From NCBI RefSeq assembly GCF_026571515.1, contig NW_026856818.1, positions 62,001-126,000 of the forward strand: a stretch of 64,000 nt of DNA, read 5' to 3'. This document shows positions 17,321 to 37,546 of this stretch, one piece after another. Every line of letters starts with the position of its first letter. The first letter of the stretch is position 1. A program made the position numbers and the translations under genes. Under the pieces are notes generated by a model. It made no database searches. It had not been told where the DNA came from and saw nothing but the letters and a program-made list of their open reading frames with translations. This DNA comes from Ruditapes philippinarum (taxonomy: Eukaryota).

Positions 17321-18034
17321 CACATATATAGACTTTTAATTAGGAAATAGATAACAATTCTGAGTGCATTGTTGTTGAATAATGCATGGTTTGAGTTCAA
17401 ATGCGTAGTAATATACTTAATTTCGAAAACAGCGTTAACGACTAAATTAAAGATATTGGTGTTCGCACTCATTATGTTAGTTAGACCATTTTCTTTCATT
17501 CTGGATAGTTTTCACAACAAAAAAGGTTTTTTATTGATCAGATTTTTCGAACAAAATGTGTCACTGTGCCGATTTGAAAGATTCGGGAGGTAATAAGATC
17601 TGCGAAAGCATTGTTGGCCTTCTTTGTGTATAAAGAAAAAAATCCAATAGTGTTAGAATATCTTATTTACTTTAATTTGTGTTATAATTGTTTCTTGTAT
17701 AATGAGTTTAAACAATAAAACATAGTTTATCATTATTGCAAATGAAAATATTGAAATGTTGCTGTTGTTGTCGCAGCTGCTGTTGTTGTTATTGTTGTTG
17801 TTGCTGCTGCTGCTGCTATATTGTTATTTTTGTTATTGTTGCAATTGTTGTTGCCGCACTTGTCACTATATAAATTTACAAAGGATGTTTTTCATTTAAA
17901 CTTTTGTTGATGTCCCGCTTAAATTTATTTAACTTAGATTAACAAACTAAATTAACAATATACGTTTTGTTTTTTTATTCTGCAGGTATACAAAAGAGTT
18001 ATCTGAAGATAACGTAGTGGTTGTGAGTGACGTC

Positions 18035-20229
18035 ATGAGGTTTTTACGGATCAAATTCGTGAAATACTTCACCTACGTGTCCTTGATAATGTGCCTGTCC
18101 CTTGTCTTCTCTTTCGTGTGGCTTGAAAAGTCATCACAAGATGTGTTCTACGATGGACCCATAATGTTTACGAATAAAAAGCAAACTTTACAACGATCTC
18201 AAACTGCACAGTATTTGACAGACCCTCAACTTAACCCGGTTCTTAGAACGTTTAGCTGTGATAAATTATTCCAGGGCGATAACACGGAGATAAATCGTGT
18301 CAGTGATTACCTTAGAAATGTTCGGTATTTTAAGCACCGCAAAGGCGATGAATTAAGAGTGTTGTCGCTAAACTGTGAAGAATACAAGAAATCCCGAGGA
18401 TTCTTTGCTGCTCCAGTTACAAAATTAGAACAGGATTTTCCAATTGCCTACAATATTTTGTTTCACAGAAATATAGAACAGTTTGAACGACTTTTACGTG
18501 CAATATATAGACCACAGAACCAGTATTGTATACATGTTGATATGAAAACGCCAGACGACGTTTTAGAAACCATGACACTGTTAACTGACTGTTTTGACAA
18601 TGTGTTCATAGCATCTAAACTTGAATATATCATATACGCAAGTTATACGCGATTAGTTGCTGATATTAATTGTATGAAAGACCATATAGAACGCAATTTT
18701 GAATGGAAATATCTAATCAATATGGCCGCCAGCGAGTTCCCTATTATGACGAATTTACAAACAGTTCAAATATTGAATGAATTTAATGGAGCTAATGATA
18801 TACACGAAGTGTTCATTACTATGGACAGTCAAAGATTTAAACAAAAACATTTTACTTACATCGATATAAAGAGTAAATCTGGATACATCATACATACGAA
18901 AAGGGCCAAAGAAAGGCCGCCGTACGGCTTAAAAATTACAAAAGGCAATGCGTATAATGTATTTAGCCGGGCATTTGTTGTGTTTGTCCTCGAGGACGAG
19001 AGAGCTCGGGCTTTGCTAGCATGGTCGACTGATACGTTAACTCCAGACGAACATTACTGGGCAACTTTGAATAATCTGTACAGTAACCCATTTCTTGAAA
19101 CACCCGGTGGTTTTAAAGGTGTGTATAACTCAAAATTATTGTATACAATCTGTTTTTCTTCATTCTTTCATTTTCGTCATCTTGTCTCCTCTTCTTTCTT
19201 TCTTTTATTTTTGTTGATACTGTCTTTCTATCCTACTTCCATTCTTACTTTCGATTTCATTTTCTTATTTTCATTCTTTCTTTCTATCTGTCTTCTTTCT
19301 TACTTCCTTCTTTACTTGCTTTCTTCTTTTTTTCTTGCTTTCTGTCTATGTATCTTTTTCTCCATATTTATTTCTTTCTATCTTCTTTCAGATTTCACTT
19401 TTCTTTACCTCTTTCTATCTTAGTTTTTTATTTGTTTATTAATTAATTAATCAATTTATTATTTTTATTTATTTATTTTTATTCATTCATTCATTCACTC
19501 ACTCACTAATTCATTTATACATTCATATTTGTACCTTATTTCTTTTTTTCGTTCTTCTTTCCTTTTTTCGTTCTACTTTCCTTTCTTCGTCCTTCTTTCC
19601 TTTCTTCGTTCTATCTCAAAATATCCACGAGAAGCCTATCGGCCAGTGGTTGTTGTTATGTATTTTCTTCTTTTTTTTTTCTTTGCAACGCGCAGTGTAC
19701 CAAATCAGCCACCATAAATAACAAATACAGAAATCACAGACCACTAAGCATACCATGATCTTTTTACTCGAATTTAACGTTTCATTTACTAGTCAGGATA
19801 GAAAAGAAATAATGAAATTTAATATTAATTATTTAGTATTATTTTATTTCACAAATTGCCTTTACCACAACCGTTTATAATATATACCATAATGACCATA
19901 TAACCTGTCAAAATCTATATAACCAATATTCTAATTCCGTTGCAGGTGATCCCGACAAGAAGCCGTTCTTCGGGCGTTATATTGGATGGAACACCACTAA
20001 ATTATTATCAAGATGCAAAGAAAAACATTACGTACATAACGTCTGCGTGTTCAGTGCCCTTGACCTTCCAGCATTAAAAGACAGATATGAACTCATCGCT
20101 AATAAGTTTGACATTGAATATGACCCCATTGCTTATATGTGTATGGAAGAATGGATTCATAATAAAACGCTAAATCAAGAAGGCATTAGTGCAACAAAAA
20201 GATACAAGAAACTTGCAATAACTAGCTAG
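18035..20229 (+). CDS. Beta-1,6-N-acetylglucosaminyltransferase, core-2/I-branching, GT14 (GCNT-like). Exons 18035-19118 and 19946-20229
   Basis: Type II membrane anchor; motifs FPIAYNIL, FERLLRAIYRPQNQYCIHVD, WKYLIN, PDEHYWATL. A phase-1 splice (AAAG|GTGTGT ... TGCAG|GT) restores the C-terminus YVHNVCVFSALDL..LIANKFD..C. Confidence 0.93.
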
Positions 20230-24100: not shown

Positions 24101-27100
24101 ATGAAGATGAAAGAACCAATTTTGGAAGCAGTGGTGGAAGAATTAGAAAAGGAGAATACATTTACGTTCTCAGGTAAAGAATGAAATTTTTCGGCCGTAG
24201 TCGGTTTGTTTCCACGTTGACTTCCGGTAGAATGTTTACTGTAAATTATAGAATTTATAAGAGATTTTCTCAGTGATTAATAATCAGATATTTTTATGCG
24301 TTATAAAAAGATTTTAAAAAATTGTATGTTCCATAATACCGGTATCTCTAAAAAAAGCAAATATGACCAGATTGTAAATTAATTTTCATAATTTGTCATT
24401 AGTGACAAGATTTCAAATTAGATAAAACAAGGTAACTATTTTTATGAAAACGTATGTGTATGATTTATTAAAAGCTTATGTAATTCAACTTAATCATTTT
24501 TGTGAGTAAAGAAAGTACCAATAAACGCGTTTACCCCCTGTGTTAAAGGACATTAAGTCAGAATCTTCTATGTTAAAATTATAATTCAAAACAAAACTGG
24601 TGAACAAAATCAGTGAAATATTCTATATGTTATCTCCTTTCAGAAATTTCAGTGCCAGACGAAACGATCAGCGCAACGACTGAAGAAAATGAAAGTATTA
24701 AGCAAAACGGTAACTTGAATCCTGTGATGGAACGTGTTGAAAATGAAAACGGAATTGACTTCGAAACCATAAACGCTTATCCGGAAAGTGAACACCAAGA
24801 GAGCGGGAAAACTGATTCAAAAAACGAAAAAGTCTTTGAAAACACAATTATGCCTGAGAATCACAATACAGACAAAGAATGTGCTAATGGTTTACAAAAC
24901 TACCCGGTTACTGTAAAGTCCATCGTTGAAGATTCAAGTGGCTCCGGTCAGTCAACTTTGAAATTAGCAAACTCGTCGTCAGCGTTCGCTCACACAAGCG
25001 ATGACTCTACAAGAACCTCTGATCAAAATATCGAATCACAAAACAATGAACATTCTATCCAAGTGAGTGAAATAGAAAACGGTGTTTCTATACATAGAAA
25101 CTACCATGACGATGACGAAAGATCTAACACGGTTGTTGAACTGACGAAAGAAAACTTAAAACATCATACCAAAACAATGAAAAATGATTCTAATAAATAC
25201 CAGCTGCTGTCTCAAGAACACTTAACAGATAAAGTTAAAAGTTCTGTTACAGTTACTACAATTTTACCTACAAGTGATGCATCTACCTTACCCGACAAAG
25301 CAGAAAACAATGCTGGGGACACAACCATTACGTGTACTATTTCTGACGCAACAATTTTGCCTAAAAGTGATTCAACTATCTTACCCGACAAAGCTAAAAA
25401 CAATGCTGGGGACACAACCATAACAAGTTCTTTTTCAGATGGAACACTTTTACCTAAAAGTGATACAACCGTTTTACCTGACAATGCTGAGAATAATAGA
25501 GGTGCCATAACCGTTGCAGGTTCTATTTCAGACGTCACAGTTTTACACAAAGGTGATGCATCTGTGCCACCCAGTACTCCTAAAAACTTTACAGATGAGA
25601 ACAACCGAAAAGGTTTTGCTTCGGATACTTCAGCTTTACCTGAAAGTGATGCTTCGGTATTTCCCGATCATGCTGAAAACAGTAACGGCTATACAGACAT
25701 TAAAGGCTATACTTCAGATGCAACAGTTGTATCTAAAAGTGCATCGATCCAACCTGATAGTGCTGAAGATAATGTAGATGAGAAAATCTCAAAGGATTCA
25801 TTGAGCAGCACAATATCCAAGAAACAAACCATTGACGATAAGGAGACTGTTTACAAGTTTGTGAATGATGTAAATCATAACACAGATGAAGCCATTAAAG
25901 TTTCTCCAACGGAATCTTCGCAACTTCATCGTCAAGCTGAAAGTAAGGGATCCCGACATTCTAACAAAAAACATAAAAAGAAAAAGAAGCATAACGATCT
26001 TGAAAATGTTGAAACATTGATAAATCAGGATGAAAAAGCAAATGTCAAAAGAAAGCGCCGAAACAAAACGAAAAAGTCAGCATTATGTAATGAAACTTCA
26101 ACTAGTCAAGGTTCGAGCGGCAACAATGAATATTCTTTGATAAAGAATGGCTTTGACGAGGGTAATACTTCACAAAACAAGGATAATAACGAACGCTCGT
26201 CAATCAGTCGCGAGGACGGCAGTGTTAACGGACAGCTTGTAGATCAGTGGAAAGGAATTGGGGTTAAACAAGGAGTTGAACTTGGCCATAAACGATTGTT
26301 AAAACGAGAGAAACAACATAAGTTCCAAAGAAAATTACCCGTGTATGATGCCAATAATACTAGCACGAGAATGATATTACTAAATAACAAATACGGGAAG
26401 GTATGAATTTTTTTTTTAAGTTTTAAGGTCATATTAATCGCGATTAGAAAATACTCAGAAATTAAGTAAGAGTTTGATATGATTTTACCGCTAGATTAAA
26501 GTAAGTTGGTCTATAATAGCAGACCACTTATGCAATGAATGATAATAACGTTGATAGTATTAGCCGCGTCATGACAAAACCAACATAATAGGTTTGCGAC
26601 CAGCATGGATCCAGACCAGCCTGCGCATCCGCGCAGTCTGATCAGGATCCATGCTGTTCGCTTACAAACCCTATGACAAGTGGAGAAACTGATAGCAAAC
26701 AGCATGGATCCTGATCAGAATGTGCGGATGCGCAGGCTTGTCTGGATCCATGCTGGTCTCAAACCCATTATGTTGGTTTTGTCGTGACGCGGCTCATATC
26801 ATTCATCATAAATATGGTCATCACTTAGACATGTATCATGATTTTTTTTAAGAAAATTCAAATTATACATCTATTAAATTGTTTTCATCAATATTTGAAA
26901 TACTAATGAAAAATGTGCCCATTGTATATCTATTCGCTTTAAACCCGTCAAAAAGTATTTGGTTAATTTTCATAATGTATTCATGACACTATATTCCTTT
27001 CAATTTGTATTTTCCTAATTCAACTTATGTTTACTGATACAATATTTGTTTTCGATGCAACTATGTAATGTCATTTTTTATGACATAATCATAATGTTTA

Positions 27101-30100: not shown

Positions 30101-33100
30101 TTGGGGTCATGATGGTGAACAAGTGTGCAAAGTTTCAAAGCCATATGTCAATGGACTTTGAAAATATTTGAACTATTACAAAAACTTTAACATAAGTGGT
30201 TACGCCGACGACGACGCGGACGCCGACGCCGACGCTCGGGTGACTGCAATAGCTCTACTTATTCTTATCGAATAGTCGAGCTAAAAATTAGCTGTTTATA
30301 TGTATCAGACTACACACAAGCACATCATCGCATAGCTTTACCTAAAGAAAAAAAGAATATATTTGAATCTATTTAGCAGCCACAATGACTGCATCCTTTG
30401 GCTGTCTGTTTTAGACAGGTTCGACTGTTTACACTGTTGTCAAGCGTTCACCGGAAATAGCTCCGCCCCTTGATTTAGTGGTAAAATAATCAACATCGTT
30501 CGAAAATGTCAACAAATACGCTACAATTAATCGCCAATTTAACAAAAATTATTCAATTTGCAGAAAAAGAAAATGCTTCTCTTACACCAGATGCATTCAG
30601 CTTCGAAAAATTTGCTTAATTTAGAAAAATCGATTATCACAGGGAAATAAGTTGAAACATTACCTCGAGTGAACTCGATGTACACCTTTTTAATTTTGTT
30701 TTCGAAGTTTTGAGGTGCTATTTCCGGTGAACGCTGTACAACAGTGGTTTATTGAATTATTGCATTGTGTTATTGAGTGAAGTTTTATCTTTTATTATAA
30801 TATTCATATTTAAGAGAATATAATTATTATGAATTATTATGTTATTATTAATTATCTACAATTTATTACATTACTTATTTTTTTGACATTTGTTTTATTT
30901 TTTCAGGTGACAGACTGTATGAAGGTAAAGTTTTTTGTTTAGAAAATATATTTTTTCAATGATACACATGTAGCATTTTTGTAACCTTTATCAGCGTACA
31001 TGTATGTCAAAGGTCATTATTTAAAATTTGATCAGAAGTTAAACTTAAATTATCATTGAAGTCCTACTATATACGTTTTATCTAAAATTATCGCGGATAT
31101 ATCACATTGTGGCACCGTTATATGTCGTACCATTGCCGCTAACTGTTGCTCTTGTTGTTGTGTGTTTTGTTGTTGTTGATATGCATGTGTTTTGTTGTTG
31201 TAGTGTTGATGTTGTGATGCGTGTGTTGTTATTGTGGTGGTATGTGGTTTTGTGGTGGTATGTGGTGGCGTTGTTGTAGTTGTTGTTTTGTGTGTTGTTG
31301 TTGTTGATGTTGTGGTGGTGTTGTTACTGTAGAGTGTGTTGTTGTTGTTGTTATGATGTGTGGTGTTGTTATGATGTGTGGAGTTGTTGTTGTGGTGATG
31401 TGCGTTGTTGTGTTGTTGTTGTTGTGGGTGTTGTTGTTGTTGAGTTTGGTGTTGTTGATGTGTGGTGTTGTTATTCTGATGTGTGTTGTTGTGGTGGTGA
31501 TGTGGTATTATTTTTGTTGTTGTTGTGGTGGTGTTGTTGTTGTGGTTTGTGGTGTTGTTGTTGGGATGGTGTGGGATGGTGTTTTTGTTATTGTGTGTGG
31601 TGGTGGTTATGTTGAGGTGTTGGTGGTGTGGTGTTGTGGAATTGGTGTATGTGGTGTTGTTGTTGTGTGGTAGTGGTGTGTGTGGTGGTGTTGTGTGTGT
31701 GGTGTTGTTGTTTAGTAAATAAAAATGAATAGATTTGTACCAGACTTAAAAATTTACTGAAAACGTTGTATTTATTGTTAAAGATTTCGACCATGCGACC
31801 ATATACATGCATCGAGGATATATTGTATGGAAGTGACCGTGCGACCATATACACGCATCACAGGATTCCCCTTCTCATACGAGAAAGGGGCAAACAGATA
31901 TCCGGCCTTTAATTAAAGCCAGAATTTAAAAATATGCCATTTCCTTATTGATAAGGGGGCTAATTTTCACGGTAATGTCTTAACTGGTTTATGTACAACA
32001 TCATTAATGCAAAATAAGCGGGAATTCAGTTTTCGTCCTTTTATGTTCGCTTTGAAATTTAAAAAAGAGAATATATAATTTCTTGGAAAATTTTATGTTT
32101 AGAGTTGATTCTACTTTTCATTTTGTGTGTACAAGAGAAAAATTGCATTTTTGCAGAACATGCAGGTTTCATAAATGCATAAAATAAGGGAGATAAATTT
32201 TCACACATTTGTAAATATTAACCTGGGGCATTTTTACCGAAGTACGTTTATTTTCTATATTCGACATGTCAAGAAAAGGTAATATGATGGGCTGCAAGAA
32301 AAAAATATATAAAATTTGTGCAGCCGACAATTGATCACACTTAACCTGCTGAATTTGTAAAATGCACTTTTCAAGCTGTAATTTTTTAGAACTGTCATAT
32401 CAAGAGTTAGTCAGCTATAAGTACAAAGCCGATGTATTACTTATACTGATAAATTCATTTCGGTTCACCCAGTGTAAAGTGCACAGTGTTTTAGTAGTTG
32501 TCATATTCAAACAATTGCTTTTGACTGGTTTGTTTGTTTGTTTGTTTGTTTGTGTGTTTGTTTGTTTCACTTTACGCCTTTTCAGTCAACAGTATTTCAG
32601 TCATATAGGCGAGTAGTTTCCTAACCATCGTTCCTGGAAAGCAACTACCTTCCTTCGTGCTAAACTAAGCTCATTTGAATTATAAACACATTCTTATAAA
32701 AAAAAGCAAATTCTGCCATACAATTTTCAATCTGCATCTATGTCTATGTAACTGTTGCAAACATCTTTAAAACTTTCATTTGTTATATTTTTTCAAGATG
32801 GAAAATAGGTGCATCGAAGAAATAATTTGAGCCGCGTCACGACAAAACCAACATAGTGGGTTTGCATCCTCGCAGTCTGATCAGGATACATGCTGTTCGC
32901 TATCAGTTTCTCTTCTTGTTATAGGGTTTGTAAGAAAACAGCATGGGTCCTAATCAGACTGCACGGATGCGCAGCCTGGTCTGGATCCATGCTGGTCGCA
33001 AACCCATTAAGTTGGTTTTGTCGTGACGCGGCTCATTTTAATTTTAAAATTAAACGAAATTTATCAATTCAGTGTCATTTTTAATATTAAGAATAACCCT

Positions 33101-33632
33101 AGGTCAGTGAGTGACAAATATCCAGCACATAACGTTTATATTGCCATTATACCATTATCATGAATTTAGATATTGCGACATTTAACGGTAGTGGAGTGAC
33201 ATTGGCATAGCGATCATAGCGATATTTAACAGAAACATATTTTGAGCGGCGGTTGCGACATTTAGCGGCAATGGTGCGACTATGAGCGTCGTTGCAACGT
33301 ACATGTGTATATAAACTCATACCAAGACTTTTTTATTCTGTTTCATTCGTTTTTTCTTTCTTGCAGCAAAAATATCAGTAAATCCAAACCGTCATCGATC
33401 TTGTCAGTGTACACTTCCACCTATACCAAGACCTCTCAATTTTTCTCCACTGACACACCAAGAGAGATCAAATAGGTACGTTTTCGCTTGGGAGCGTCTC
33501 TACGCCGAACCACAGATTCGTCCCGTTTCCTCTGTGAGGCCGTACTCATCTATTTCCGGAAAGAAAGTCGGTCTTCACGTTAAGGTACCGAATGCTTTTG
33601 CTGCACCATTTAAGAAAGAGACCGCATTGTGA
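24101..33632 (+). CDS. Uncharacterised ~772-aa low-complexity protein. Exons 24101-24173, 24644-26400, 27338-27378, 27740-27774, 28844-28972, 30907-30924, 33367-33632
   Basis: All six introns are GT-AG with matching phases (1,0,2,1,1,1), giving 2319 nt open to TGA. The large exon is S/T/N/D/E-rich with basic clusters (KKHKKKKKH, KRKRRNK). No family recognised. Confidence 0.75.
25264..25773 (+). repeat. Coding tandem repeat, 93 nt / 31 aa, about 5.5 copies
   Basis: ttacccgacaaagc..aacaatgctggggacacaacc at 25288 and 25381; consensus approximately LPKSD.T.LPD.AENN.GDTTI....SD.T. Confidence 0.85.
26561..26796. mobile_element. Palindromic MITE (TGAGCCGCG...CGCGGCTCA family)
   Basis: Nearly the whole element is self-complementary; copies at 32828, 45875 and 48617. 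Confidence 0.9.
28313..28682. repeat. Two tandem copies of a hairpin element (tgacaggttatatgg...catataacctgtca)
   Basis: Hairpin at 28313-28425 and a degenerate second copy at ~28533-28682. Fragments at ~7360-7400, ~19865-19925 and ~27190-27320. Confidence 0.65.
29187..30287. mobile_element. Helentron-associated (HINE/pearl-like) element carrying a 164-bp tandem array (about 5.8 units)
   Basis: Begins aacaagagctgtc..gacagc (short palindrome); inverted pair gctcgactattc / gaatagtcgagc; gacgcc microsatellite near the right end. ttctgtcaaaatgcttgat recurs at 29401, 29565, 29729, 29893 and 30057. Confidence 0.85.
31150..31712. repeat. TG/TGT/GGT-rich low-complexity tract
   Basis: Direct reading; it produces the spurious Cys/Val ORFs. 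Confidence 0.9.
32828..33035. mobile_element. Palindromic MITE copy (internal deletion in left arm)
   Basis: Homologous to 26561-26796. Confidence 0.88.
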
Positions 33633-34546
33633 AGAATCCGACCATTCATTCTAAAGGTACAATTATCAATCACCAGTGTCTACAGTCGAAAAACGAATTC
33701 TGATGTCTATGACAACAGTTGTACAGTGTGGTTTCGCTAGTATGGTGCAAAACCGAGGAAATAATTTTTCGGCAGATGCAGCAACCGATGAGATAATAAT
33801 GATGACTTTTGATGTATTTTTTCATCACATATATGCCTGAAAGACAGAATTTAACACAAAAAAACATTACTTAATTGCATACTGTACTAAAGGTCATAGT
33901 CAAACCTTGATTTTAGCTTTAACATTTCTAAGGACAGTTTAGGAAATAAGTATTTCAAGTGACTCACTTGACAAATGCATAGAAAAGTGTGTGTTCTTTA
34001 ATTTTATGACTTTATTCCTTGTATGCCCTTTCAACACATCTGTGTCTATACTCCGCCAGTGCACATGTACTTGTGTATTTGTCAAGACAAAGATAGGGAG
34101 ATTTGATAGAAAATATTTTTCCGTAACATTAAATAACAACTTTAACTATTTATTGCTTAATTGTATAATTTTAATAGTATTCTTCTTACAAACACCACAT
34201 ATTTAAAGAAATATATGTGTTAAGCGAGTCGTGTATATTATCAATGATAGAAGTCTACAGTGCCCCTACCCCCGCCCTCTCGCTCCGCCCGGCCTCCTTC
34301 AGAGCAACAACCTTCTGTTTAGTCTTAATTCATCCCAAAGTAAATACACAAATATTAACCTCTCTTTGAACAACAACGCTCACAAACTGTTTTTGTCTCC
34401 AAAAGGTACTTCTGCACAGATTTAACTGTACTTATCTGAAAACTTTTAAGTCCTCTGTTCATATTCCTATTATAACCAATGGAAAATATTAAAAGAAAGT
34501 CCATTATTTTATTCTTTGTTTTTTTCTTATTTAATGATTTATAATG

Positions 34547-34549
34547 TAT

Positions 34550-34596
<47 letters not shown>

Positions 34597-34632
34597 TTTT
34601 ATTTTATTTTATTTTATTTTATTTTATTTATT
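34547..34632. repeat. (ATTT)n/(ATTTT)n microsatellite
   Basis: Direct reading. Confidence 0.9.
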
Positions 34633-34950
34633 TCTTACATTTTTTTATTTATTTTTGTTTACTTTTATTATTTTTTTTCACTTGAGCTATGTTTCAAGCG
34701 TTGTTTATATTATATGTATAACTACATTTAAATATGTATTATTAACCCTCTTATATGTATCCGGCCTCTTGTTTATTGAGATATGAAACTAAGTGTATAA
34801 ACTAGGACAAATTCCTATTCGGGTTGTAACATCTTGCTTTGTTTTATCGTTAAACAAATAACAAAATGTAATCTCTCACCTCATAAACAGTGACCACTTA
34901 AGTGCGTCTGCACTCGAGAAAAAACATTTCTTATTTAAAAGGAGAGAAAT

Positions 34951-36114
34951 ATGGATATTAAAGCAGTTGCTTGTTATATTGTCACTGCCGTTACCTTTGA
35001 AATTGTTTCTGCGAGCTTGTACGACCCACATTTGTTTCCAGGTCATGATAAAGGACCTTTTTTCGAAGGGTGGTACATGCGGGTAACCGATCAGTTCTCA
35101 CGTGACAGTTTTGGATTGCTATTCGGAAGTGTTTTGCCATCTTCTTCGAGGAATGTTTCCGGTCCTTTGGTGGTCGCTTCTATCTTGCTTCGACGTTGTG
35201 ACGTAACGAGTGATACATGTAAGTTAATATCAATAGATGGAAAGTTTACAACAAATGATTTAGATATTACAGTAAATGGACAAGACGTTACGACTGATCC
35301 CGACAAAGGGTCGCCACCTAACTTTAAATGGCAGGTTAACAACGGAACGCATGGCGGATTTTTCGAACAAAATGGCGGGAAAACAACTTTTAATTTCAGA
35401 CTAGGAGATTTAACATTAAGAGGTGAGGCAAAAGATCCGTGTTACTGGAATGCAGCGGGAACTGGTCCGGAAGGATGGCTGATAAACTTTCCACTTCCGC
35501 TACATTGGTTCGTGTATAGTTTGAGATCAGAGCTTACTTCCTATGAGATTCAGAATATAACCAGTGGCACCGTGACTAAAGGAAACACAGGCGCCGTTCA
35601 TTTGGAGAAAAATTGGGGGAAATCATTTCCTTCAGAATGGATTTGGTCAGAGGGCATTTCATTTGACAAAGACAACGCAACATTTGCCTTGTCTGGTGGA
35701 TTAGTTGACTTCTCATTTATTTCCGTAAACGCTTATTTGATTGGTTACCGCAACCAGGCGCAAAACTTGTCCCTAGACTTCAGACCAGACAACAGTATAA
35801 TCAACGCACGAATTAACGGATGTTTGGGATATGTGAACATGTCTGTCAACAGTTTAATGTATAAAATGGAGATCAACTTGGCAGCGCCAGTCTCAACGCT
35901 CAGTTCATGTCTGTTAGGACCGGAAACACGTGGCTTCGTTCGCGCATGCGTTGAGAGTTATGATGCCGAAGCAACAATTACAGTGTCTAAGAGGAGTTTT
36001 CTCCCTTTTCAATACAACATAGTGGAACAGAAAACGTTTAAAAATATTGCTCTAGAATTTGGAGGCCATAATGTGTGCAACGATACATGCTCTACAACCG
36101 TATCTTCCAGGTGA
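34951..36114 (+). CDS. Tocopherol cyclase (VTE1)-like protein with signal peptide, single coding exon, 387 aa
   Basis: Family motifs PFFEGWYMRV, GPEGWL..PLPLHWFV and HLEKNWGKSFPSEWIW. Hydrophobic N-terminus ending VSA-S; AATAAA at ~36219 and ~36293. Confidence 0.85.
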   Translation: MDIKAVACYIVTAVTFEIVSASLYDPHLFPGHDKGPFFEGWYMRVTDQFSRDSFGLLFGSVLPSSSRNVSGPLVVASILLRRCDVTSDTCKLISIDGKFTTNDLDITVNGQDVTTDPDKGSPPNFKWQVNNGTHGGFFEQNGGKTTFNFRLGDLTLRGEAKDPCYWNAAGTGPEGWLINFPLPLHWFVYSLRSELTSYEIQNITSGTVTKGNTGAVHLEKNWGKSFPSEWIWSEGISFDKDNATFALSGGLVDFSFISVNAYLIGYRNQAQNLSLDFRPDNSIINARINGCLGYVNMSVNSLMYKMEINLAAPVSTLSSCLLGPETRGFVRACVESYDAEATITVSKRSFLPFQYNIVEQKTFKNIALEFGGHNVCNDTCSTTVSSR

Positions 36115-36404
36115 TAGTTTTACGACGGAAATTACAAATATATATTTTTTTTTTTTTGAAAACTTCCGGTTCCGGTGCGTAAAGTGGTGACGGATATTAC
36201 GGATATATGAGTGTATTTAATAAACAATTATTTTCAATAGATTTGTATGAGGAAGTAAGAATAGTCGTTTTCTAATAATGCCTTTTCAAACTAATAAACA
36301 AAAAGAGAGGTTATCATTATTGAAATCTGATACTATCTATCTATCTATCATCATCATCATCATTTTAAGTCAGGTCGGCATTAAAAAGCTTTGAAGAGAG
36401 TTCT

Positions 36405-36562
36405 CAGCTTTATTGGTAGAGGAAGACCCCAAGTACCCATTTGAGCATTATTTTACGCACGAGCGGGCACCCGAGTAGAACACCAACCTGCCGTGAGCTT
36501 GTTGGATAGCTTCCTCACACAAAAGAACCTAAAGTTCCTGACAGGGATTCAAATCCACACTA
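36405..36562 (-). mobile_element. SINE fragment (Meta/RUDI-like body, same family as 41562-41901)
   Basis: cagctttattggtagaggaagacccc..cacgagcgggcacccgagtagaacacc..ggatagcttcctcaca is the reverse complement of that SINE's body. Confidence 0.75.
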
Positions 36563-37546
36563 CAATATTGTAAAACAGGTCGTGGTTAATCATTTATTAA
36601 TTTACAAACAAGAAAGCAGACAATCATTGTTTCTCATTTTATGTAATATAACATACTACAAAAGAAATAAGTTTATCAATATACCATTTAACTGCAAGAA
36701 GAACAAGTTAAATGTGTCTCTTGAAGTAATAAATAAGGTGAAATACAGCCTCGTGTTGCAATTCTTAATGTATACTGTTGGAAGTTGCGACGGCTTTGAT
36801 TGAACCTGAGGAAAACCACTAAACTTCTGTGACCTTCCTGAATCATAAGCCCATTGTCATGAACGAATGAACGATTGTTTCTTGATTTGACTCCACAACA
36901 GTGAGGAGCGAATGATTTGATAACTAGGACCTTATCCATTAAGGCATTGGACATGCATTATAAACGGCATAGCATTTTCAAATTAATGTTTCATTTCTTG
37001 AAGCGTTTTACATTTGTGAAGCACACTAGCTAAGCATAGTCAGTAGTGCATTTAATTTCTTTTTAATGTTTGTTGTTGTTGTTGTTTAAGCGAGGCTCAT
37101 ATTTTTTCGAGATAAAAAAGACTGATAGTTATATGCTTAACTGATATGTGAGTTATATCAGTTTTTATGTTTGTTTGTTTTTTTGTTTTTTTTTTGTTAG
37201 TGTGTTTTTATAAAAAAATAATTGTACTGGTGCATTACGAGAACGGCAGTAATTCGTTGAAATACTGTTGAACTGAAGATATTTGCATCAACAAAAAAAA
37301 ACCTTCTACGTAAATTATAACATGTTTCGACGAGGCTGTTGAAAAAAACAGACATCTCGTTCAAACAGCATCAAACCTTGGTCCTAAGGGCAGTTTTACA
37401 GCACATTCTTTGGATGACAGTTTATTCAAAATACTTAAAGTAATAATGGTTGAAGAAGATATTGATCGTATTAAGATACTCTTGGATGAAATTCAAACGG
37501 TAACAACACATGTGTGGGATGTGGGAATAAATGAATCAGAAAGCAG

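Follow-up and report, generated by a model that had tools for sequence, protein, structure and literature searches.

The presence of tocopherol cyclase is usually taken to mark a photosynthetic organism, and animals are assumed to make no chromanols. An intronless open reading frame in the genome of the clam Ruditapes philippinarum, which carries the motifs of this family behind a secretory leader, therefore raises the question of whether such a gene belongs to the animal, how it came to be there and what its product does. We examined this gene within a 64,000-nucleotide stretch of contig NW_026856818.1 (the window), whose numbering is used throughout.

An intact, transcribed and host-integrated gene

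The open reading frame opens with an ATG, has an in-frame stop five codons upstream, and is accompanied by the following features, given with their coordinates, strand and source.

34527..34683, no strand: (TTAT/TTTA)n microsatellite upstream of the gene (Tandem Repeats Finder)
34796..34801, + strand: TATAAA, candidate TATA box, ~25–30 nt ahead of the first transcript-contig base (sequence)
34826..34950, + strand: 5′ UTR, matching the genome without a break (X1 contig starting at 34826, X3 contig at 34844)
34951..36114, + strand: single-exon coding sequence of 387 amino acids, PF14249 tocopherol-cyclase family, exported subfamily (ORF list, Pfam, transcript contigs, AF2 model)
34951..35013, + strand: predicted signal peptide, residues 1–21, MDIKAVACYIVTAVTFEIVSA (hydropathy and leader in orthologues)
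35059..35076, + strand: FFEGWY motif, residues 37–42 (sequence)
35599..35646, + strand: H217-x-EKNWG-xx-FP-xx-W-x-W, residues 217–232, the most conserved family motif (sequence)
36115..36244, + strand: 3′ UTR (AATAAA at 36219–36224; the X3 contig ends at 36244)
~36400..36560, no strand: SINE-like short interspersed repeat of ~160 bp, downstream of the gene (genome copy search)

An earlier note made from the DNA letters had described an intact reading frame with both family motifs, seven N-x-S/T sequons and eight mature cysteines, and the ORF list and our own reading of the sequence confirmed each of these. A genome search found one copy of the gene in the 1.41-Gb assembly (67.3 bits), in a contig ≥126 kb long and near B-box and GT14 animal genes; the Branch/GT14 neighbour (18017–19423) is also one long ORF, and the GC content of the gene equals that of its surroundings. 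In the DNA-type run X15 the depth was ~90–100 over the gene and both flanks alike, with no coverage break of the kind that the note had linked to contamination. The microsatellite and SINE that it had seen on either side were likewise borne out, the former by Tandem Repeats Finder and the latter by at least 2573 first-look candidate copies in the genome, with 40 scored copies of 81–83% identity on other contigs and a depth of ~21,000 in the DNA-run contigs. These contigs break within the upstream (TTAT/TTTA)n microsatellite (34527..34683). The gene is genuine, intact and integrated in the host genome.

Contigs from three small RNA-like runs (34826–36585, 34919–36090 and 34844–36244) were colinear with the gene and contained no joint, which bears out the lack of a coding intron, and no 5′ UTR intron was seen in contigs X1 and X3. 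The RNA-like contigs were confined to 34826–36585 and the flank depth in these runs was 0. The RNA nature of runs X1–X3 is an automatic guess backed by this coverage pattern only and, judged in that way, the gene is transcribed as an unspliced RNA. The TATAAA element may act as a promoter element, with the exact transcript start not fixed by the contig ends. At the 3′ end the poly(A) site would lie at the end of the UTR as drawn above; a second AATAAA is present at 36293–36298 and the X1 contig continues to 36585.

Family membership and export features

The clam protein matched Pfam PF14249 over profile positions 2–335 of 335 (E 4.3e-19, 69.2 bits, cut-off 26.6), and this full-length match together with both motifs establishes its place in the tocopherol-cyclase family as earlier proposed; a search of NCBIfam with the protein gave no match. 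FFEGWY.R (residues 37–44) and (Y/H)xEKNWG..FP..W.W, of which EKNWGKSFPSEWIW forms residues 219–232 in the clam, are kept in animals, protists, exported bacteria and cyanobacteria. E39, G40, W41, Y42 and R44 are shared by every subfamily, cyanobacterial cyclases included, and every family-wide invariant residue, charged ones among them, is kept in the clam protein. VTE1/SXD1 of plants and slr1737 of Synechocystis share this Pfam family with it by full-length match and also have PH...FFEGWY.R, EKNWG..FP..W.W, E335(D) and E369; a fold common to VTE1 and the clam protein is presumed, as a PDB sequence search found no VTE1 structure. YxEKNWG has been proposed as catalytic in VTE1 (PMC4963081).

However, VTE1 and slr1737 have a transit peptide or no leader where the clam protein has a signal peptide, they do not have its subfamily-specific Cys pair and sequons, and they carry Tyr rather than His before EKNWG among further fixed differences. 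The cyanobacterial cyclases are only 20–23% identical to the clam protein and form a separate clade (support 100), parted from the exported subfamily by a stem of 1.4–2.1 substitutions per site; they have no leader and begin directly at ..PHSGYHW..FFEGWY. His stands at position 217 in 97% of the animal, 100% of the protist and 95% of the exported bacterial sequences but Tyr in 100% of the cyanobacterial cyclases sampled, and H217/Y, R267/H, P173/T and F187/Q are all fixed yet different between the exported subfamily and the true cyclases. As judged from these comparisons, the clam protein is not VTE1 but belongs to a distinct exported branch of the PF14249 family.

A hydrophobic N-terminal stretch (residues 3–16) is followed by VSA and S on either side of the predicted cleavage point, directly after which the mature N-terminus reads SLYDPHLFP. 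Essentially all animal and protist orthologues have a hydrophobic leader of variable sequence ahead of a conserved (S/N)(L/Q)(Y/F)DPH, and on hydropathy and this conservation we judge that a signal peptide is present, in support of the secretory leader originally described, with cleavage probably after residue 21. The C-terminus (...CSTTVSSR) has no hydrophobic tail and no KDEL. Nine cysteines are encoded, C8 in the hydrophobic N-terminus and those of the mature protein at 83, 90, 164, 291, 320, 333, 376 and 380. All animals and exported bacteria (100%) have the C291–C376 pair, and its two positions are Cys in 92% and 84% of protists, while these positions are mostly without Cys in cyanobacteria (12% and 25%); co-occurrence was 0.95 for 291–376 and 0.88 for 320–380. 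The seven sequons lie at N68, N131, N202, N242, N272, N296 and N377. Sequon density is 1.31 per 100 residues in animals versus 0.27 in cyanobacteria (0.27–0.46 in bacteria overall), a comparison in which AT-rich coding sequence may raise Asn counts, and single sequon positions are poorly conserved (best 20/41). From these sequence features the clam protein is predicted to be secreted, disulfide-bonded and N-glycosylated.

Distribution and inheritance

The clam protein itself is already in NCBI and UniRef, and animal orthologues of 35–71% identity were found in bivalves (Mercenaria, Mactra, Mya, Dreissena, Sinanodonta and oysters), in gastropods (Haliotis, Patella, Littorina, Aplysia, Lymnaea and Elysia) and, outside molluscs, in Lineus, Tubulanus, Owenia, Oculina and Lytechinus. 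They span five phyla (Mollusca, Annelida, Nemertea, Cnidaria and Echinodermata), with several of the genes on chromosome-scale contigs. Among the named matches of the protein searches, the second of which used a profile and extended little beyond the first, there was no vertebrate, arthropod or nematode. This supports patchy retention among animals, one of the two histories that the earlier note had offered. Database genes named as tocopherol cyclase or cyclase-like in animals are orthologues, namely Haliotis rubra 'tocopherol cyclase, chloroplastic-like', Mercenaria LOC128545959 and Acropora digitifera K09834. Identity to the clam protein is 71% for Mercenaria and 41–45% for Haliotis and the coral Oculina, and the annotated orthologues have the same leader, motifs and Cys pattern, with no essential difference. 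A coral-clade genomic contig from a metagenome (L082) contains an intact, colinear ORF with no intron; since this copy is intronless too, intronlessness is an old trait.

Beyond animals, members were found in the protists Balamuthia, Planoprotostelium, Physarum, Soliformovum, Dermamoeba, Telonema, Lapot and Emiliania, and the exported subfamily as a whole covers animals, Amoebozoa, Telonema, Rhizaria, haptophytes and some Bdellovibrionota and Myxococcota. Its members have in common an export signal in the form of a signal peptide or a lipobox, a mature N-terminus that reads (D)PH..P..GP(F/W)FEGWY, and the specific Cys pair. The closest bacterial relatives are 28–32% identical over the full length and have signal peptides, many with a lipobox, ahead of an LLDPH..P..GPWFEGWY N-terminus. 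Because protists and bacteria share both the leader and the mature N-terminus, export appears to be ancestral to the subfamily, and the proposal that a plastid-type enzyme had been retargeted to the secretory pathway does not hold. Among bacteria, matches at E≤1e-15 were present in 21 of the 131 genomes from the phylum to which Silvanigrellaceae belong, versus 1 of 151 sampled genomes of the Myxococcota phylum. With the gene this sparse, an association with predatory bacteria was set aside. The only recurrent neighbours were genes for CheW and a dCache-MCP, in Silvanigrellaceae/Oligoflexia genomes that are close relatives of one another, and the bacterial gene neighbourhoods gave no metabolic context and no functional clue.

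In the phylogeny the animal sequences form one clade (UFBoot 93/SH-aLRT 77), within which Lophotrochozoa (100/94), Cnidaria plus Echinodermata (97/96), gastropods (98/91) and heterodont bivalves are recovered, in agreement with species relationships. The earlier note had also offered horizontal acquisition by this lineage, and had named broad vertical orthology among metazoans as the observation that speaks against it. Such orthology, with animals monophyletic, is what was found, and as the animal tree follows animal phylogeny a recent transfer is refuted on the note's own terms. On this tree, the gene is vertically inherited within animals since at least the cnidarian–bilaterian ancestor, with losses in several phyla.

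How the gene entered the animal line is a separate matter, and a transfer at or before that ancestor may have occurred. It would have brought the gene into the animal stem with a marine protist or bacterium as donor, in place of descent from the last eukaryotic common ancestor, and would change the origin of the gene but not its identity. The sister of the animals is a haptophyte-containing protist clade (100/98) and not Amoebozoa, and an exclusive clade of animals and Amoebozoa was rejected (ΔlnL 277, p-AU 5e-29); the coding sequence is intronless in clam and coral alike, and the spread over eukaryotes and bacteria is very patchy. Each of these would fit such an acquisition. However, a single clade of all eukaryotic copies was not rejected (p-AU 0.25), and deep paralogy with differential loss predicts an identical pattern. 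The haptophyte-containing clade consists of six rows with Emiliania as its named member, no sponge, ctenophore, choanoflagellate or fungus is among the named sequences of the tree, and the AU tests used LG+G4 with fast searches, which are less robust to long branches than mixture models. We therefore regard an ancient acquisition as a minority reading, though one to be taken seriously, next to descent from an early eukaryote.

A recent transfer from a bacterium or alga into the clam or molluscs, or a contaminant contig, has in its favour only that the coding sequence and UTRs lack introns, that plastids and cyanobacteria supply the best-known members of the family, and that bacterial homologues exist, and is to be dismissed given the five-phylum clade matching animal relationships, the mere 28–32% identity of the nearest bacteria, the even DNA depth over gene and flanks, the setting among animal genes, host microsatellites and a SINE of >2500 candidate copies, the matching GC content and the age of the intronless state.

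Predicted fold and likely function

The AF2 model of the clam protein (pLDDT 95.3, pTM 0.91) is predicted to be an all-β AttH-like double barrel. Its top structural matches were Fsa2, CghA and Phm7 (Z 23.5–24.5), followed by AttH (Z 22.5), kievitone hydratase (20.8) and 25-phosphosteroid lyase (17.7), with the next match at Z 6; a PDB sequence search with the clam protein and a 105-sequence profile gave no match. By comparison with this model, the structural neighbours of known function are all enzymes acting on hydrophobic substrates. The fungal decalin-forming Diels-Alderases (Fsa2, Phm7, CghA and MycB) are the best fold match, with ~300 residues aligned, but at 7–10% identity and with EKNWG not shared the likeness is one of fold only. 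They are intracellular enzymes of polyketide-NRPS clusters that carry out pericyclic reactions, and the fold class also has members that work as pericyclases or lyases and not as acid-catalysed cyclases. Kievitone hydratase (7A0T) and AttH (2ICH) have the same double β-barrel, with 277–282 residues aligned to the clam model, although kievitone hydratase, CrtC-type carotenoid 1,2-hydratases and AttH are just 8–13% identical to the clam protein, which does not have their Pfam matches. Fungi secrete kievitone hydratase, a glycoprotein that hydrates a prenyl C=C, and this makes it the closest parallel to an exported enzyme in which acid catalysis activates an alkene.

We put a probability of roughly 0.6 on the joint reading that the gene encodes a single-copy secreted or luminal glycoprotein of the exported PF14249 branch, vertically inherited in animals, which acts as an acid-catalysed prenyl-lipid enzyme; its likeliest function would be that of an extracytoplasmic cyclase or hydratase on a prenyl or isoprenoid lipid, both the catalysis and the substrate class being deduced from conserved sequence. 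After cleavage of the signal peptide the ~366 mature residues would form a soluble secreted or luminal protein carrying N-glycans and folded into an AttH-like double β-barrel, held by disulfides C291–C376 (subfamily-wide), C320–C380 (animal-wide) and C83–C90 (local). The conserved acidic and basic residues E39, R44, H217, E219, K220, E335 and E369, placed in the two most conserved motifs of the family, would protonate a C=C in a prenyl or isoprenoid lipid once this is bound, and an internal hydroxyl (cyclisation) or water (hydration) would then add to it. This reaction would take place outside the cytoplasm, for instance in the digestive lumen, in lysosomes or in the haemolymph, and the substrate would probably come from food or the environment and not from a vitamin-E pathway. 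Literature searches for functional studies of animal or exported PF14249 proteins gave genome-annotation mentions only.

The protein could instead be a non-catalytic extracellular lipid binder or carrier, which would take up and move hydrophobic molecules in its barrel cavity in the manner of lipocalins. The double barrel has a lipocalin-like fold, we know of no activity for AttH, a protein-language search lists clusters of Svf1 (survival factor 1) among the look-alikes, and predicted secretion, glycosylation and disulfides are found in many carrier proteins. Binding alone, however, poorly explains why the seven charged residues listed above are conserved in animals, protists and bacteria, with most kept in true cyclases too, and the nearest solved structures of known function are all enzymes; we consider a carrier unlikely.

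Somewhat less likely again is a strict tocopherol/chromanol cyclase, which would close the ring of dietary DMPBQ, plastoquinol or tocotrienol-quinols in a vitamin-E-like antioxidant salvage. Every family-wide residue is kept, including the EKNWG core proposed as catalytic in VTE1 (PMC4963081), the animals with the gene for the most part feed on algae or house algal symbionts, and chromanols and chromenols have been reported from marine invertebrates (PMC9078042). However, the clam protein lies outside the VTE1 clade at 20–23% identity to the cyanobacterial cyclases, the four fixed differences described above point to another substrate or chemistry, and non-photosynthetic amoebae and Bdellovibrionota hold the same subfamily. 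Furthermore, VTE1 acts at plastoglobule lipid surfaces and not in an oxidising secretory lumen.

An acid-catalysed prenyl-lipid enzyme thus remains our preferred reading, for a gene that is already annotated in many genomes and whose animal homologues are listed in coral genome papers with none characterised. The coral gene has been listed as 'plant-derived' (PMC3750612) and reported as a domain count (PMC6214176), and the literature found on animal homologues made no mention of the exported subfamily, its protist and bacterial members or its vertical history in animals. With the gene so widely annotated the practical value of the present analysis is moderate. The animal genes do not derive from plastid or cyanobacterial VTE1, which corrects both the 'plant-derived' label and a tempting story of horizontal transfer. 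As a speculation to which we give little weight, marine invertebrates, amoebae, haptophytes and some Bdellovibrionota may share an extracytoplasmic prenyl-lipid cyclase or hydratase that would take isoprenoid quinols or other prenyl lipids from ingested cells as substrates, and some animals could use it to close the chromanol ring of dietary precursors and thereby carry out the final step towards vitamin-E-like antioxidants. The well-conserved exported sister branch has persisted for more than half a billion years, in phagotrophic protists as well as in corals, sea urchins, worms and molluscs, and it offers a concrete candidate enzyme, one that can be expressed and assayed, for extracellular or digestive isoprenoid-lipid chemistry in animals.

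The clam gene and its genomic setting

A secreted, intronless tocopherol-cyclase-like gene had been described in an earlier note from the sequence alone, and the features below were located at this locus (residue numbers refer to the 387-aa protein).

Features of the tocopherol-cyclase-like locus
34951..36114, + strand: tocopherol-cyclase-like ORF with ATG start, 387 codons (ORF listing)
residues 37-42: FFEGWY motif (clam protein sequence)
residues 219-232: EKNWGKSFPSEWIW motif (clam protein sequence)
34527-34683: (TTAT)n microsatellite, upstream of the gene
34796-34801: TATAAA, candidate promoter, 25-30 nt 5' of the first contig base
36219-36224: AATAAA, candidate poly(A) signal, ~20 nt before the end of one RNA-like contig

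The 387-aa ORF, both motifs, seven sequons (N68, N131, N202, N242, N272, N296 and N377) and eight mature cysteines were all present as described, with an in-frame stop codon 5 codons 5' of the ATG and a further cysteine, C8, within the hydrophobic N-terminal stretch, which ends in VSA followed by S. The protein matched PF14249 (Tocopherol_cycl) over nearly the whole profile (positions 2-335 of 335) with an E value of 4.3e-19 and a score of 69 bits, the cut-off being 26.6 bits, which supports its tocopherol-cyclase family identity. There was no NCBIfam match to the protein, and a PDB sequence search gave no match to either the protein or a 105-sequence profile.

The clam gene is the single PF14249 match in the 1.41-Gb assembly, lies on a contig 126 kb or more in length and has a GC content similar to its surroundings. 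Host repeats flank it as claimed, with the (TTAT)n microsatellite on the 5' side and, ~290 bp 3' of the stop codon, an interspersed repeat of 160 bp for which the rest of the genome contains at least 2573 candidate copies. Among the other ORFs in the window, some belong to genes for B-box zinc-finger proteins and one to a Core-2/I-branching glycosyltransferase gene. The latter, at 18017-19423 (+), is a single 468-aa ORF (GT14, PF02485; E 1.5e-42) and apparently single-exon, so the cyclase-like gene is not alone in the window in lacking introns. A 597-aa ORF at 24613-26406 (+), assigned a GTG start in a mechanical ORF list, had no Pfam match at E<=1e-3.

The stretch carrying the clam gene was present in 20 public runs from 13 studies, and we compared reads over 31200-37100 in three small runs (RNA by software guess) and one large DNA-type run. 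Each RNA-like run gave one genome-colinear contig (34826-36585, 34919-36090 and 34844-36244) with 0 joints, and depth was 0 across 33367-34745, which indicates that the locus is transcribed with both CDS and UTRs unspliced, in agreement with the claim of an intronless gene. Depth in the DNA-type run was ~90-100 across the gene and both flanks with no break in coverage, and the gene is therefore not a contaminant. As the contigs cannot fix transcript ends, we infer the TATAAA to be a promoter element and the AATAAA to be the poly(A) signal. Position 35466 in the CDS was C in all four runs and T in the assembly; among the rows listed, this and 35355 were the only variable CDS sites, compared with ~20 in the 200 nt past the stop codon, a contrast consistent with purifying selection on the CDS. 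A repeat at 32579-33169 reached a summed contig depth of ~4.7 million in the DNA-type run and 50,000-250,000 in the RNA-like runs, in contigs with many internal joints and strand switches; a SINE or satellite-like element that is both abundant and transcribed is the probable identity.

Relatives, export signals and origin

A word-indexed search with the clam protein, which is already entered in NCBI and UniRef, returned 94 proteins, nearly all with PF14249. These included bivalve (Mercenaria (71%), Mactra, Mya, Dreissena, Sinanodonta, Saccostrea and Ostrea), gastropod (Haliotis, Patella, Batillaria, Babylonia, Littorina, Nucella, Aplysia, Lymnaea, Plakobranchus and Elysia) and nemertean (Tubulanus, and Lineus with 2 copies) proteins, together with those of the annelid Owenia, the coral Oculina and the sea urchin Lytechinus, and many of these lie on contigs of chromosome scale. 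Relatives from vertebrates, arthropods or nematodes were not found among the named matches of this search, which is not proof of absence, and the distribution across named groups supports the suggestion of patchy retention in animals. An exhaustive HMMER search gave 641 representatives at E<=1e-3. Eukaryotic relatives outside animals that could be named were Amoebozoa (Balamuthia, Planoprotostelium, Physarum, Soliformovum and Dermamoeba), Telonema, the rhizarian Lapot, the haptophyte Emiliania, one MMETSP protist and a long-branch chlorophyte. The best bacterial matches were full length at 28-32% identity and came from Silvanigrellaceae, Oligoflexia, Bacteriovoracaceae, other Bdellovibrionota, Myxococcota and a few others; among bacteria the gene is sparse, with matches in 21 of the 131 genomes of one phylum and in 1 of the 151 of a second. 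The cyclases of cyanobacteria such as Synechocystis and Phormidesmis showed 20-23% identity (E ~1e-9).

All animal and protist orthologues begin with a hydrophobic leader of variable sequence, followed by a conserved mature N-terminus, (S/N)(L/Q)(Y/F)DPH.(F/Y)P..GPFFEGWY. Likewise, the closest bacterial relatives have a signal peptide, in many with a lipobox, and then LLDPHRLP..GPWFEGWY, whereas cyanobacterial cyclases have no leader and begin ..PHSGYHW..FFEGWY. These shared leaders and mature N-termini argue that export is ancestral to the subfamily, and the proposed retargeting to the secretory pathway in animals is refuted on this sequence evidence. C291 and C376 (co-occurrence 0.95) were found in 100% of animals and exported bacteria, 92% and 84% of protists, and 12% and 25% of cyanobacteria. 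The pair C320 and C380 extends across animals (co-occurrence 0.88), whereas C83 and C90 are confined to some bivalves and C164 occurs only in the Ruditapes philippinarum protein. Sequons per 100 aa numbered 1.31 in animals, 0.96 in protists, 0.46 in exported bacteria and 0.27 in cyanobacteria, with individual positions poorly conserved.

We built a quick tree of 115 rows and a careful IQ-TREE analysis of 80 rows (LG+C20+F+G4 PMSF), both rooted on cyanobacterial cyclases, and the exported subfamily formed a clade (99-100) on a long stem.

Clade support in the careful tree (UFBoot/SH-aLRT)
Animals: 93/77
Lophotrochozoa: 100/94
Cnidaria + Echinodermata: 97/96
Gastropods: 98/91
Clam (window) sequence + Mercenaria: 100/99
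Animals + Emiliania-containing clade: 100/98

The clam and Mercenaria sequences were placed within a heterodont bivalve group, and this broad vertical metazoan orthology refutes the idea of horizontal acquisition in the clam lineage. The sister of animals was a six-row clade including Emiliania, with Amoebozoa, Telonema and other protist groups further out, and bacterial relatives fell, without firm placement, among the eukaryotic groups, as a grade in the quick tree and a clade in the careful tree. In LG+G4 AU tests a single clade of all eukaryotic rows was not rejected (delta lnL 13, p-AU 0.25) and an exclusive animals+Amoebozoa clade was rejected (delta lnL 277, p-AU 5e-29); possible origins are therefore deep paralogy followed by loss and an ancient lateral transfer in which a lineage of marine protists took part. 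Together, these proteins are a coherent exported subfamily, distinct from VTE1 and newly recognised here, across animals, diverse protists and a few bacterial lineages.

Several loci (L-numbers) merit separate mention. On L082, a coral-clade metagenome contig, there is an intact, colinear ORF of 433 aa whose product shares 83% identity with a coral-clade protein, so intronlessness is no clam peculiarity. Two others, L084:1501-2550 and L085:150-1199, were colinear by tblastn over residues 18-378 with a longest open frame of 185 aa, and may represent a pseudogene, sequencing error or a diverged coral paralogue. Metagenome contigs L138, L140, L149 and L159 hold relatives split by an intron (two HSPs ~0.6-0.8 kb apart; 43-45% identity near the EKNWG motif); their source is probably a eukaryote whose VTE1-type gene is of the classical kind with introns. 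The cyclase of L057, a MAG labelled Mesorhizobium carmichaelinearum, grouped with cyanobacterial tocopherol cyclases in the quick tree, and reflects either contamination during binning or transfer of the gene to an alphaproteobacterium.

Fold, conserved residues and possible function

Literature on the exported branch consisted of genome-annotation mentions, with no experimental work found: a coral K09834 match is listed under 'plant-derived proteins' (PMC3750612) and the family appears in a Pfam domain table (PMC6214176). The clam gene is an orthologue of invertebrate genes already annotated but uncharacterised. Bacterial gene neighbourhoods gave no functional clue. In L002 a dCache-MCP chemoreceptor gene precedes the homologue, which starts at that gene's stop codon and may form an operon with it; the chemoreceptor gene lies upstream in ~10 related Silvanigrellaceae/Oligoflexia loci (including L002, L003, L006, L008, L011 and L012), with a CheW gene further upstream.

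AlphaFold2, using a 105-sequence alignment, gave a confident all-beta model (pLDDT 95.3, pTM 0.91), with a helix set apart at residues 3-15 as would fit a signal peptide. Foldseek and VIA-align identified one fold class (~260-305 residues aligned), comprising the decalin-forming Diels-Alderases Fsa2, CghA and Phm7 (Z 23.5-24.5), AttH (2ICH; Z 22.5), kievitone hydratase (7A0T; Z 20.8) and 25-phosphosteroid lyase (9G4C; Z 17.7), with the next unrelated solved structure at Z 6. All members of known function are enzymes that hold a hydrophobic isoprenoid, polyketide or steroid substrate inside the barrel.

Comparison of animals, protists, exported bacteria and cyanobacterial cyclases showed conservation in all four groups and the clam of P26, H27, E39, G40, W41, Y42, R44, F125, W166, W186, E219, K220, N221, W222, G223, F226, P227, W230, W232, G250, P324, G328, E335 (Asp in cyanobacteria), E369 and G371. 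Fixed differences from true cyclases included H217 (Tyr in YxEKNWG), R267 (His), P173 (Thr) and F187 (Gln). In a study by Gabruk et al., YxEKNWG was put forward as the VTE1 catalytic region and unexplained bacterial homologues were noted (PMC4963081).

The main functional rival to an enzyme is a non-catalytic carrier. An enzymatic role is plausible from sequence, model and analogy, because the family-wide charged residues have all been kept over a very long time, and because of the fold class, the export signals and the reactions of VTE1 and kievitone hydratase, which are the closest analogies in function. In VTE1 a phenol-OH adds to a prenyl C=C, and in kievitone hydratase water adds to a prenyl C=C. 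Our best reading is that the clam protein is a putative extracytoplasmic enzyme acting on a prenyl/isoprenoid double bond, which it would protonate, with an internal hydroxyl or water then adding to the protonated bond; food-derived prenylquinols would be one candidate substrate among several.
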